This document shows positions 1,733 to 44,865 of a stretch of DNA of 50,272 nt, piece by piece (positions within the stretch are counted from its first letter, which is position 1; each line of letters starts with the position of its first letter). Position numbers and translations under genes: made by a program. The notes under the pieces were generated by a model. The model was not told where the DNA came from and made no database searches. It saw only the letters and a list, made by a program, of their open reading frames with translations. Location: the NCBI GenBank assembly GCA_002269645.1, contig NIVC01003950.1:1-50272 (forward strand), read 5' to 3'. Source of the stretch: Macrostomum lignano (Eukaryota).

Positions 1733-3299
1733 ATATTTTCATGATAGCCCACCTCCATGTAGCCCCATGCTCTAATACAGATACTAATACAAGGATCAAT
1801 GCAATTTAAGCCTAGAAAAAAAATCTTTACAGAATTTTGTTTTCATACATGTAATTCCAAACAAATGTCAACTGTGTAGACTGCCGGAAGTTGTATATAC
1901 GAGTAGATTGTTCATAACAAAAGGAAGTAATATTGTATTTATTCAATGCACCTGATGCGAAAATATTAAAATTATACAAAACCAAAAACATACAACACAT
2001 GCATATCTAGAAGCCAAAATTTAGATTTTAGGGCCTACGCATATTTGATCATTGAGCTAGGCCGTTGCTTCCTTTCTTGGAAATATAGATCTAGATTCTA
2101 CTTTAAAGATTCTCAAGATTCTTCTAAAGATTCTAAAGATCCAGGATCATTCGAAGGCTAGGCTCTAAGAAATAAATGATTTTTCTATTTAAATGATGAG
2201 GTTTATTTAGATAAAATGTAAATAATTCATGCGCGAAATATGAAATTATTGCTTAAAATGAATGCCAAATGAGCCTCGAATTCTAGAAGCTTCAAGGTTT
2301 TGATATTTATTAGGCTATACGAGTAATGAGTTTTTATAAAAAGTTTAATTATAATTATAAACATGATTATAATAATAAGGTGCAGTTTATTTACCTTTGG
2401 CTTTATTTTATAGTTTGTTATATTTAGTTTTAAAAAGAATGCAAAAATCAAACTATTCTTTTAAAATTTAAGTCTTCATTGACCACTACACTAGTCACTA
2501 GAGTAGCTTATAGGCTTATGGCTTAGGCCTAGCATTTTTTGGGGTGCTAATCAATTTGACAATGGAGATAATGAGAGATTAACTAAGGGCAGATTTGTCA
2601 AAAGCCAAATAAGTTTTTCATTATAATTCAATAATTGTAAATTTAAATTTAAAATGATTTAATTGGTATTGCAGCCTATTTTTTTTAGTTTACTATATTA
2701 ATCAGTATATATTAGAAAAATTTTCCTAATATTTTTAAAATGGCAATCCTACACTTCTGTTCGGTAAATTATTTTGACACTGAATTTTAAACAGGCGTGT
2801 TAAATAACAATGTAACCAAACAAAACTGAAACAGTGGAACATGGTAGCAGTCTGTTAGAGCGCATAGTCACTTAGAGTGTGTCTGCAGGTCATTAAAGTG
2901 TCTACAATAGATAGTAATGTCCAATCCAGTATAGGATAGCCCCAAATGGACATTGGGGATACAGACAACGCCAAATTGAAGCTAAAAAAACAAGCAGCCC
3001 ATAAGCAACAGCTCCCTTAAACTGACACCCCCTTAAACTCTGTTCGCTCAAACTTTTGGCCATAGACACAATGCCAATCAACGTCCATACATGCGCAACT
3101 GCTGGCCGACCTGGCCGATCCGGCCACCGTAAATCGTGGCTGACCAGGGGTAAGTCGCAAAATTGAGTCAACCAAAAACAGAAAAACACAAGAACCAAGA
3201 AAGGCAAGAGGAAAGCAAAAGAAAGAGCAGTTCAGGGAAAATGGTGAAGCAAAAGAAAAACAATTCGCAAAAGAAGCAAACTAAGTTGTAAAAATAATC

Positions 3300-3575
3300 A
3301 GGTAAGTCGCAAAAAGGATTAAGTAAGTCGCAAAAAGGATTAGGTAAGTTGCAAAAAAGATTAAGTAAGTCGCAAAAAGGATTAGGTAAGCCGCAAAGGA
3401 TTAGGTACTGGTAAGTCGCAAAAAGGATTAGGTAAGTTGCAAAAAGGATTAAGTAAGTCGCAAAAAGGATTAAGTAAGTCGCAAAAAGGATTAGGTAAGT
3501 CGCAAAAAAGATTAAGTAAGTCGCAAAAAGGATTAGGTAAGTCGCAAAAAGGATTAGGTAAGTGGCAAAAAGAAG
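3300..3575 (+). repeat. 21-bp minisatellite AGGTAAGTCGCAAAAAGGATT, ~13 copies, inside the TIR element
   Basis: Direct reading of tandem units; explains the spurious ORFs LILFATY / PNPFCDL. Confidence 0.9.
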
Positions 3576-3747
3576 CAACTAAGTCGCAATAAGAAGGAGG
3601 TAAGTCACAATCAGAGGCAATCAGGGGGTAGTAGGTGCAAGTGTGGCAGGAGAGCAAAAACAGAATAGAAGCCTTCAACCATAGACAAGATCTTTGAAAT
3701 CAGAAGCCCGCGTCAACAGTTTCCCATTGATTTCTTAAACTCTGGAG

Positions 3748-41367: not shown

Positions 41368-42155
41368 ATAGATAGATAGATAGATAGATAGATAGATAGA
41401 TAGATAGATAGATAGATAGATAGATAGATAGATAGATAGATTGATAGATAGATAGATAGATAGATAGATAGATAGATAGATAGATAGATAGATAGATAGA
41501 TAGATAGATAGATAGATAGATAGATAGATAGATAGATAGATAGATAGATAGATAGATAGATAGATAGATAGATAGATAGATAGATAGATAGATAGATAGA
41601 TAGATAGATAGATAGATAGATAGATAGATAGATAGATAGATAGATAGATAGATAGATTGATAGATAGATAGATTGATAGATAGATAGATAGATAGATAGA
41701 TAGATAGATAGATAGATAGATAGATAGATAGATAGATAGATAGATAGATAGATAGATAGATAGATAGATAGATAGATAGATAGATAGATAGATAGATAGA
41801 TAGATAGATAGATAGATAGATAGATAGATAGATAGATAGATAGATAGATAGATAGATAGATAGATAGATAGATAGATAGATAGATAGATAGATAGATAGA
41901 TAGATAGATTGATAGATAGATAGATAGATAGATAGATAGATTGATAGATAGATAGATAGATAGATTGATAGATAGATAGATAGATAGATAGATTGATAGA
42001 TAGATAGATAGATAGATAGATAGATAGATAGATAGATTGATAGATAGATAGATAGATAGATAGATTGATTGATAGATAGATAGATAGATAGATAGATAGA
42101 TAGATAGATTGATTGATTGATAGATAGATAGATAGATAGATAGATAGATAGATAG
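41368..42155 (+). repeat. (GATA)n microsatellite, left part
   Basis: Direct reading, with occasional GATT variants. Confidence 0.97.
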
Positions 42156-44865
42156 TGTAATGACTCAGACTAGCTATTTAGTTTGGCGAGAGAAACGATG
42201 CACTTAAATGAGCCGACTGCTCAATTCAATATATTTATAGGCCCGAGAGCATTGCGTAATAAGAGTATTGCTACGAGTTAGTTCATCGACCAAGCCAAGT
42301 ACATTATTACCGCGCAGAGCGTACACTACATCTCTCCTCATTTTGGATTAAAAGTTTTACTGCAAAAGGTTTTTAAAAAAATGAAAATTACCACAAATAC
42401 GAGTAAAATCTTGCAAAGAAGAAACATTAATAGAGAAAATGTTACTGGTTGTACATGTAATGCCTTAGCTGGAGAATGAACAATTTTCTATCCGCAATCT
42501 CAAGACGCAAAAGCAAAATCAAACAAGATATTAGCGTCAGTCTGCCAAGCGCGAGTTATAGTTAAACCCTATAGTTCACTTTCACCTTGGCCTCTCGGGG
42601 GTGTGGTCGCAGCGCAATTGGAGGGGTCGCGGGTTCGCTCCCCGCAGCTTGCAGGATCGGCGGTGCGGTCTCCCCGACAGGAAAATCGGGCTCTGCATCT
42701 GGCGCTACCCGCTTCAGGTCAGTGCAGTGCCGCCTGCAAACTCTGGCGCCCTGCCGAATGGTCATCGAGTCGCCCTTGACACTCTCGACCAGCCAGGGTG
42801 TCCACTCGAACGGAGTCTCGCCCTTGAGCGGATTTAGTCGGCGCCGGAGCACCGTGTCGCCGACTTTGAGCCCATGCGGTCTCGCCTGCCGTCGCTTGTC
42901 CGTGTAGCGCTTGCCCTTTGCCTTGCTGCTGGCGTCCTGCTGTCGGAGCCTCCTGTCTGCGATGGCCACCGGTCTCGACGGCCTGATTGACGGGATGGCG
43001 TCGTTTGGGACGCGACCCAAGAGCAGCTCGGCTGGTGCCCGGTTGGTGGTTCGCTGCGGCGTGCAACGGTAGGCCAGCAGCCACTCGTCAAGGGCCGCCC
43101 TCCAGTCGCGCTTCTGGGCAATGGCAGCTCGTACAACCTTATTGATGGAGCGGTTCAGGCGCTCAGTGATGCCGTTGGCCTGCGGATGCAGCGGTGTGAT
43201 GAGACGCTGCCGGATTCCGTAGCTGTCCAGAAAGCCTTTGAACTGGGCCGAGGAGAATGGCGGGCCGTTATCGGTGACCAGTACCTGTGGGATGCCGAAT
43301 CTGGCGAACGAATTCCTCAGCTTGGGAATCAGCGCTTCGGCCGTTGTGGTCTGGACGATCTCGACTTCAGGGAAGCGCGAGTAGTGGTCAACGCAGACGA
43401 GCAGCATGCTGCCTTGAATGGGGCCTAGCAGGTCTGCCCCTAGTGTTAGCCATGCAGCTTTCGGGATCGGCGTCGGCTTCAGCGGCGCGGCGGTCACGTC
43501 GGCCGCGTGCGACGTAGCTGCACAGGCTCGGCAGGCACGCACGAAGAGCTCCGCTTCTGTCTGCATCCTCGGCCACCAGACTTTGGTGCTCAAACGGTCA
43601 ACCGTCTTGCGCAAGCACTGATGACCGCGGTGTGCCAGGTCCAAAACCAGGCGCCGAAGCGCCATTGGAACTACGATTCTCTGGCCCCGCAGGAGCACGC
43701 CGTCTGCTGCCGATAGCTCATTCCGTAGGGCGTGGAGCGATCGCGTCTCCGCCGACTCGAGGCTCCATCGTCCTGTCTCCAGCGATCGAATAGCGGCTTG
43801 AATTGTTGCATCTTGCAGCGAACTCTCTTGCACTGAGGACAGCGACAGCGCGTTCGGTATGGCCGCCTGGACGATTGCAGTGATGCAGAGGGTGTCGAGC
43901 TCTTCGCCGACATTTCTTCCTCGTGTTGGCAGCGGCTGCCGGCTCAGCACGTCCGCTGGGTTTAGCCAGGCTGGTATTCGACTGTAAATTTCATATGCTG
44001 AATGCGCAGCGCCATTCTTTCGATCCTCGGGGAGGCCTTGAGCCACTGCTGAACAATGCGATGAGCGGCTTGTGGTCTGTCACCACCGTAAATGTCGGAG
44101 CGCCGTGCAGATAGTACTGAAATTTCAAGCAGCCGTATTTGACGGCCAGCGCCTCCTTCTCAGTCAGGAGTTCCCTCCTGATCCTCTCGGACCGGTAATG
44201 AGCCACGATCTTGTCCCTGATGAGCGAGTCTCGGAGTTCGCCGAACGTACATTGGTCCGCAGCCTTGCGTAGCCGATGATACCAGGCCTCAATTGACTCT
44301 CCTTCCTCCTGCCGGCATATTTCAAACTGGTACCTGAGGAAGACAACGCTGTTCTTTTGGTCGAAGATACCCTGCAACTTTTTGATGAGCTCCTCCGCGG
44401 ACTCTCCTTTCTTGACGCCGTTATCGTCCATGAAGTCTTCCAGCTTCTCGCCCGCAGTGTAAACTAAGAGCTCCAGCTGCTGTGTCGCATCTGTGATGCC
44501 AGCTGCGCGTATGTAGCTGCTGAACCTTCGCGTCCAGGTTTTCCATCGCTGAGCTCTTGTCAGAGGATCGCCTTCGAGGTCAAAGGCGTCTGGTGCCGCG
44601 AGTTGCAGGGCCTGTGCCATATTTGCTGAATCACCGGTCGTTATCAGTGCGCGGGGGGTTGGCCTCACTGAGAGTTTGCTTGCGACGCCATGTAATGACT
44701 CAGACTAGCTATTTAGTTTGGCGAGAGAAACGATGCACTTAAATGAGCCGACTGCTCAATTCAATATATTTATAGGCCCGAGAGCATTGCGTAATAAGAG
44801 TATTGCTACGAGTTAGTTCATCGACCAAGCCAAGTACATTATTACCGCGCAGAGCGTACACTACA
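42156..44865 (-). mobile_element. Internally deleted Ty3/Gypsy LTR retrotransposon, 2710 bp
   Basis: Identical 175-bp LTRs TG...CA (42156-42330, 44691-44865), 5-bp TSD GATAG, PBS-like TGGCGTCGC next to the 5' LTR (44690-44682) and PPT GAGGAGAGA next to the 3' LTR. Internal: gag N-terminus, partial RNase H (ALAV..FQYYLHG..TDHKPL) and integrase (HHCC, D-D-E, GPY/F-like). No protease or RT. Confidence 0.95.
42562..43963 (-). CDS. Open integrase-containing pol segment of the Gypsy element
   Basis: NPADVLSR...AHRGHQ...VRACRAC (HHCC), GADLLGP, TDNGPPF, HPQANGITERLNR, GLKVGDTVL; stop-free to TAA 42564-42562 but out of frame with the upstream gag fusion. Confidence 0.75.

Follow-up and report, generated by a model that had tools for sequence, protein, structure and literature searches.

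A specific mutational process which converts a TA dinucleotide into TA-CATG-TA, and which thereby creates the octamer TACATGTA, exists in the genome of Macrostomum lignano (assembly GCA_002269645.1). The stretch analysed here, in the following called the window, is a complete contig of 50,272 bp which carries the innexin copy g3. A first reading of this contig, made from its letters alone, had claimed that ten TACATGTA sites are in excess and had explained them as Tc1/mariner excision footprints. All ten coordinates were verified as exact, and the over-representation survives the masking of repeats. With moderate confidence we regard TACATGTA and a second word, TACGAGTA/TACTCGTA, as excision scars of TA-targeting transposons of the Tc1/mariner type, probably with a 6-bp scar like that of Minos.

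The same assembly contains two sister copies of the window locus, one on a 727-kb contig (L001) and one on a 33.6-kb contig (L002). They are ~99% identical to each other and are collinear with the window from 14.8 to 35.8 kb at an identity of 94-98%; the comparison of sister copies covers this part. The M. lignano genome paper describes a duplication of recent date, whose blocks (identity of at least 95%) amount to 180 Mb. An unlinked paralogous innexin locus, present in three copies of 30-35 kb each (L003-L005), was used as independent sequence.

At three sites the extra bases lie exactly at a TA, and their removal gives a single TA. The first, 30422..30429, is found in a copy of a short interspersed nuclear element (SINE). 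Eleven sibling copies of this SINE read ACTTA-ACTCTG or a close variant without the 6 bp, which are also missing from the orthologous copies in L001 and L002, within one collinear high-scoring segment pair. Therefore, the gain took place in the lineage of the window. The second site, 17235..17242, belongs to a 20-mer minisatellite whose sibling units end in GAGTAT-GGAAGC, while the unit at 17235 reads GAGTA(CATGTA)T-GGAAGC; this clean 6-bp gain is common to the window, L001 and L002. The third gain escaped the sequence-only reading and is specific to L001 (20351-20358), where it interrupts a perfect (AACT)n microsatellite in the context AACTAAC-TA(CATGTA)ACTAACT. The phase of the array is restored once the 6 bp are removed, and the insertion is missing from L002 as well as from the array at 17675-17914 of the window. 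Apart from it, the (AACT)n arrays of the three copies are interrupted by single-base substitutions only.

Two of these three clean gains (30422 and L001:20351) are specific to one homeologous copy, so that the comparison of homeologs suggested earlier did reveal polymorphism of TA versus TACATGTA, and the process must therefore have acted before and after the copies diverged. Sites 15336, 17010, 17235 and 23199 are kept in the sister copies and are therefore older than the copy split. Among the four sites which had been presented as internal controls, 30422 and 17235 stand as clean CATGTA gains at TA; 12221 is ambiguous and the evidence at 15336 is weak. Four further sites have neither a paralogue nor a sister copy in the sequence compared: 1846..1853 and 14766..14773, both in unique AT-rich DNA (the latter 66 bp past the end of the L001 coverage), 40907..40914 in unique DNA, and 42452..42459 in a young retroelement.

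In the window TACATGTA is ~20 times over-frequent. The ten copies compare with 0.52 expected from dinucleotide shuffles, none of 100 shuffles reaching ten, and with 0.4-1.1 or 2.0 expected from Markov models of orders 0-3 and of order 4, respectively. Ten of the 15 ACATGT hexamers are flanked by T...A, while the corresponding share is below 15% for each of the other 15 palindromes of the form TA-xy-y'x'-TA. Masking of tandem repeats with TRF leaves 38 kb of the window, and in this masked sequence eight TACATGTA are observed versus 0.31-0.43 expected (p ~1e-8 to 1e-9). Here the word ranks third among all octamers, only after CT-repeat words, and is the top octamer that is not of low complexity. 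Of the 256 TA-N4-TA words it alone stands out, and nothing comparable is seen in seven control frames (among them AT-N4-AT and CA-N4-TG). The only palindromic octamer which is commoner in the window is GGGCGCCC, whose 12 copies are due to the 20-mer tandem array GACAGGGGCGCCCACCAAGA at 40234-40460 (11 copies, 98% matches).

The second word has the form TA-CGAG-TA. In the window TACGAGTA is found on the plus strand at 1898..1905, 2318..2325, 40091..40098 and 42398..42405, the last of these within the young retroelement, and L003 contains TACGAGTA or TACTCGTA at 2877, 26324, 26854, 28843 and 30705. These nine occurrences (four plus five) compare with 0.88 expected (p ~4e-7), and both orientations are represented (TACGAGTA five times, TACTCGTA four times). 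The flanking contexts are all unrelated, and removal of the inner 6 bp mostly restores a TATA-like site. Most of the L003 sites are common to L003-L005, one of them having decayed in L004 through a point mutation. The position L005:22889, considered as a clean polymorphism of TA versus TACTCGTA, was rejected, as it is a complex 22-bp replacement between homeologs. TACGAGTA is not palindromic, and TACGCGTA, which would be expected if each end contributed two nucleotides, occurs 0 times; therefore, the four nucleotides should come from one end and not as two per end. Most sites of both words lie in locally AT-rich DNA.

Known excision footprints

Excision of Tc1/mariner elements produces 3' overhangs of 2 or 3 nt, whose sequence, enclosed by the TA duplications, forms the scar. 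Tc3 most often leaves TACATA or TATGTA (+4 bp), Sleeping Beauty leaves TAC(A/T)GTA, and the Tc1-like element Minos leaves an excision scar of 6 bp. A search of the literature found no paper which ties TACATGTA to transposon footprints.

Tc1 and Tc3 from Caenorhabditis elegans share with the proposed scars the TA target, the CA...TG tips, the staggered cuts which leave terminal nucleotides behind and the scars made by end-joining. However, TACATGTA (+6) would need both 2-nt overhangs to be retained. Sleeping Beauty and Frog Prince are similar in that their scars are composed of TA, paired terminal overhangs and TA, and the pairing of the outer C:G bases of the overhangs explains why these scars are nearly uniform. 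They differ by their 3-nt overhangs and a scar of +5 bp, and in the masked window TACAGTA (3 versus 2.2 expected) and TACTGTA (2 versus 2.2) are at background level.

Minos from Drosophila hydei also inserts at TA and leaves a net scar of 6 bp. This scar is composed of the TA duplication and the last four nucleotides of one of the inverted repeats, and the tips of the element begin with CGAG. Such a tip would yield TACGAGTA/TACTCGTA, the second word found here. Both words have the Minos-type shape (+6, TA-N4-TA), and CGAG is present in both orientations, as would be expected of a tip which is not palindromic. In contrast to Minos, the main word contains CATG and not CGAG, and neither an element nor a transposase of the Minos type turned up in the sequence examined. 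The scars are common to diverged homeologs and one of them has decayed by point mutation, so they must be old and are not due to laboratory Minos. As a type, the scar thus resembles that of Minos (+6 bp) more than that of Tc1/Tc3 (+4 bp).

A Tc1/mariner family of the DD37E (Mosquito) type has been published for M. lignano itself, with 35 copies, six of them intact, a TA duplication and a terminal inverted repeat (TIR) with the tip CTGGG. It shares the genome and the TA duplication with the proposed scars and shows that a source of Tc1/mariner transposase is present in the species. However, its tip is CTGGG, and the word predicted from it, TACTGGTA/TACCAGTA, is only weakly enriched (3 versus 1.4 expected), so that the family can be dismissed as donor of the two main words. 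L001:14607, which looked like a new TACTGGTA event, turned out to be a point difference only.

Under the proposed mechanism, the insertion of an element would duplicate the TA, and on excision staggered cuts would leave a few terminal nucleotides of the transposon on the flanks. End-joining would then seal TA, four nucleotides and TA, with a net gain of 6 bp. The CGAG word would be made of four nucleotides from one end, as in Minos. In 3' overhangs of four nucleotides of the type C-N-N-G the outer bases can pair, and the full self-complementarity of CATG overhangs would explain a uniform scar. The local clustering of the words, together with the absence of TACATGTA at the unlinked locus, would fit insertion hotspots or local hopping. 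For TACATGTA alone it is possible that CA and TG were contributed by the two ends of CA...TG-tipped elements.

Candidate donors and objections to an excision origin

We looked for donors by a scan for TA-flanked inverted-repeat pairs. Two families with CA...TG tips were found. Family A (2750..5162 of the window) begins after a TA with CACTTCTGTTCGGTAAATT, has a TIR with 23 of 24 matching positions and consists of ~390 bp of its own sequence and a nested 2-kb element. Its outer flanks are partly palindromic, so that the position of its terminus is approximate. Family B is non-autonomous and TA-flanked, and is present in L003 (22312-23171), L004 (17260-18954) and L005 (17222-18081), the L004 copy having doubled in length through a tandem expansion in its interior. 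It begins after the TA with CACTTTTTCCGTTCAATTT, has a perfect TIR (CACTTTTTCCGTTCAATTTCAACA...) of at least 50 nt, and the sequences beyond the TAs are unrelated. The CA...TG tips of both families match an origin of TACATGTA from two nucleotides of each end, as the model of the sequence-only reading needs.

The 2-kb element nested in family A (3086-5098) has a TIR which begins with CATACATGCGCAAC, and a third copy of this tip is located at about 15548. The CATACATGCGCAAC tip was considered as a CATG-tipped TA donor, but this is ruled out by the perfect 8-bp duplication TCAACGTC (3078-3085 and 5099-5106); going by the length of this duplication, the element is hAT-like. A 1.9-kb inverted-repeat element at 37438-39374 was rejected as CGAG-tipped donor, as its arms do not end in TA followed by CGAG. 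In L001 (5364-6017) and at the equivalent position of L002 there is a 654-bp element resembling a miniature inverted-repeat transposable element (MITE), with the TIR GGGGAGGCTTCCCAAGCGCTAATTTTCATAACCGCTAAC and the 8-bp duplication CTCGTGAA. Its empty site in the window (30294-30301) is clean, and it represents the only presence/absence polymorphism of an element among the sister copies. As it is filled in L001 and L002 and empty in the window, DNA transposons have moved at this locus after the copy split. A GGGG-tipped MITE which resembles it lies inside the 31-mer array of the window (11969-12190).

The explanation by Tc1/mariner excision given in the sequence-only reading is partly borne out. 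TA-duplicating elements with CA...TG tips do exist and an intact family is published, but several observations weigh against an excision origin of the words. No element with CATG or CGAG tips next to a TA was found in ~190 kb, a tiny fraction of the genome. The TA-flanked elements which did turn up carry CACT tips, from which 4-nt scars of the form TACACTTA/TAAGTGTA would be predicted, and these occur 0 times. At no site does one of the three sister copies contain an element while another carries the scar. That a transposon was the agent, and the way in which it acted, are therefore inferred. No transposase is encoded in the window.

Further objections concern the words themselves. The earlier premise of a Tc1/Tc3-type scar is not supported, as TACATA and TATGTA show no excess in the masked window (9 versus 6.2 and 10 versus 6.8 expected) and TACATGTA is a gain of 6 and not of 4 bp. 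In 14 kb of clean unique alignment between the sister copies there are 0 indels of at least 4 bp of the TACATGTA type. Four of the ten sites (12221, 23199, 15336 and 17010) contain two adjacent TACATG-like hexamers, which makes slippage possible there. A very young retroelement with long terminal repeats (LTRs) contains the words at 42398 and 42452, which may therefore either be very recent or have been inherited as sequence of the family. CATG and CGAG words are paired twice within 60 bp, at 1846/1898 (44 bp apart) and 42398/42452 (46 bp apart), while ~0.1 pairs are expected (P=0.004 for uniform positions, P=0.012 for positions drawn from TA sites). Both pairs have opposite relative orientation and unrelated spacers, and excision offers no explanation for two such pairs at a distance of ~50 bp. 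Finally, the unlinked locus L003-L005 contains zero TACATGTA in 28 kb of masked sequence. The excess is therefore local and not uniform, and the very high rate of insertion and excision which had been proposed is not supported if it is meant for the whole genome. The same applies to the suggestion that frame-preserving scars add two codons to genes, since 0 TACATGTA sites lie in recognised, Pfam-supported exons.

A more far-reaching version of the excision reading is that at least two 'ghost' families of TA-targeting elements with the tips CATG and CGAG, today rare or extinct as elements, have left an unusually legible excision record. It would consist of uniform 6-bp scars at a local density of ~1 per 4-7 kb, which are the most over-represented octamers, are patchy in density and are co-localised. 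We put this forward as a speculation which is rather doubtful at present. If it were true, the sequence alone would allow past movement (e.g. local hopping) and the end-joining of the host to be reconstructed.

Excision scars of DNA transposons are familiar from experimental work. They are rarely seen as a genomic signal, as the repair products are usually mixed. If the words are indeed such scars, M. lignano repairs these breaks very uniformly, and its non-coding DNA, microsatellites and SINEs among it, bears the measurable mark of excision as well as of insertion. The words would then offer a means to map the former activity of transposons and to place it in time relative to the recent genome duplication. 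This is also of practical relevance, because transposon-based transgenesis is under development in M. lignano. The words suggest past or present endogenous activity of the Tc1/mariner type and would predict how the scars of remobilised elements look.

Competing explanations

The words could also stem from another kind of break and repair at TA, either from a superfamily other than Tc1/mariner with a 2-bp duplication or from a sequence-specific nuclease or repair pathway. Two of the objections given above, the missing Tc1/mariner donor with matching tips and the absence of an excess of canonical Tc1/Tc3 scars, speak for this, and the DNA elements seen to move at the locus have 8-bp duplications. 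However, elements of that kind would give site-dependent scars and no fixed word, while for the Tc1/mariner superfamily the hallmark of a scar is a TA duplication with a small number of fixed nucleotides. The flanks do not provide a template for the inner CATG, by which an origin of TACATGTA from hairpins or palindromic nucleotide additions is ruled out. Altogether we consider this explanation unlikely.

Replication slippage would create TACATGTA without any transposon, by tandem duplication of an existing hexamer (GTACAT, TACATG or ACATGT). It finds its support in the four sites with two neighbouring TACATG-like hexamers. At 12221..12228, in a 31-mer minisatellite rich in GTACAT, the sibling units read GTGTGTACAT(A/C)GATTA and the unit in question reads GTGTGTACATGTACATCAATAA. 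A scar and a tandem duplication of GTACAT explain this equally well, and the caveat on slippage made for this site in the first reading was justified. Site 15336..15343, followed by CAC and kept in L001, can be compared with the paralogue at 28085 at an identity of only ~74%, with a gap of either 5 nt or 6+1 nt, and slippage would need an additional C-to-T change there. At the edge of the 20-mer array (17004..17017) TACCTG is directly followed by TACATGTA at 17010. The TACCTG is present in L001 and the window and missing in L002, which differs from them by exactly one hexamer; going by its sequence, this double hexamer could be due to slippage or to two adjacent scars. The double hexamer TACATGTACATGTC at 23199..23212 is common to both sister copies, and from its sequence it could likewise be a tandem duplication of TACATG or two adjacent scars.

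Slippage thus probably accounts for some of the TACATGTA sites. As the origin of the words in general it is improbable. The ancestral sequences at 30422, 17235 and L001:20351 (ACTTAACT, GAGTATGG and AACTAACT) contain no hexamer which could have been duplicated, so that the recurrent, sequence-specific gain claimed earlier is confirmed at three sites beyond slippage. Moreover, slippage leaves the excess of TACGAGTA in two loci unexplained.

It was also considered that the words are selected cis-elements, such as a palindromic transcription factor site or an RNA motif of the UGUA type, which cluster in AT-rich intergenic DNA. TACATGTA is indeed palindromic, the sites cluster (P=0.004-0.012) in AT-rich surroundings, and four sites are kept between the sister copies. 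However, at an overall identity of ~97% the conservation of a site is uninformative, and the flanking context is not conserved. Insertion created TACATGTA in a SINE and in one array each of micro- and minisatellite type, in none of which a function is expected, and the unlinked 28-kb locus has none in spite of its paralogous innexin gene. Selection of this kind therefore seems quite improbable to us. An artefact of chance, composition or assembly is hardly conceivable, because the p value after masking is ~1e-8 (~1e-3 corrected for all octamers) and four sites recur in independently assembled sister contigs, although the excess shrinks considerably under Markov models of higher order (expected counts of 3.1 at order 5 and 8.1 at order 6), which is inevitable when such models are trained on the same words.

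Retroelement, genes and satellites of the window

The young retroelement which contains one site of each word is an internally deleted element of the Ty3/gypsy type on the minus strand (42156-44865), inserted in an (ATAG)n array. Its LTRs are identical, 175 bp long and bounded by TG...CA (42156-42330 and 44691-44865), and it encodes a gag-RNaseH open reading frame (ORF) and an integrase ORF. The TACATGTA at 42452 is located between the stop of the integrase ORF (42562) and the 3' LTR (42156-42330). As an internal empty-site control we considered the two direct repeats of 175 bp (42156 and 44691), but they are the LTRs, and both words lie outside of them.

The large exon of the innexin gene is located at 24631-25560 on the minus strand and matches a Macrostomum lignano protein with an identity of 99%. 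The window also contains CRIB and kinase exons of a PAK-type kinase (9094-13400, plus strand) and an ORF of 439 amino acids for a seven-transmembrane protein of the secretin family (21347-22666, minus strand). Both appear to be missing from the public protein set. When used as queries in homology searches, the PAK exon and the seven-transmembrane ORF gave no matches, and an exact look-up of the product of the latter gave no record. Micro- and minisatellites make up about a quarter of the contig, with (ATAG)n, (GACA)n, (CTAA)n and (GAGT)n as well as many arrays of 11- to 34-mers.

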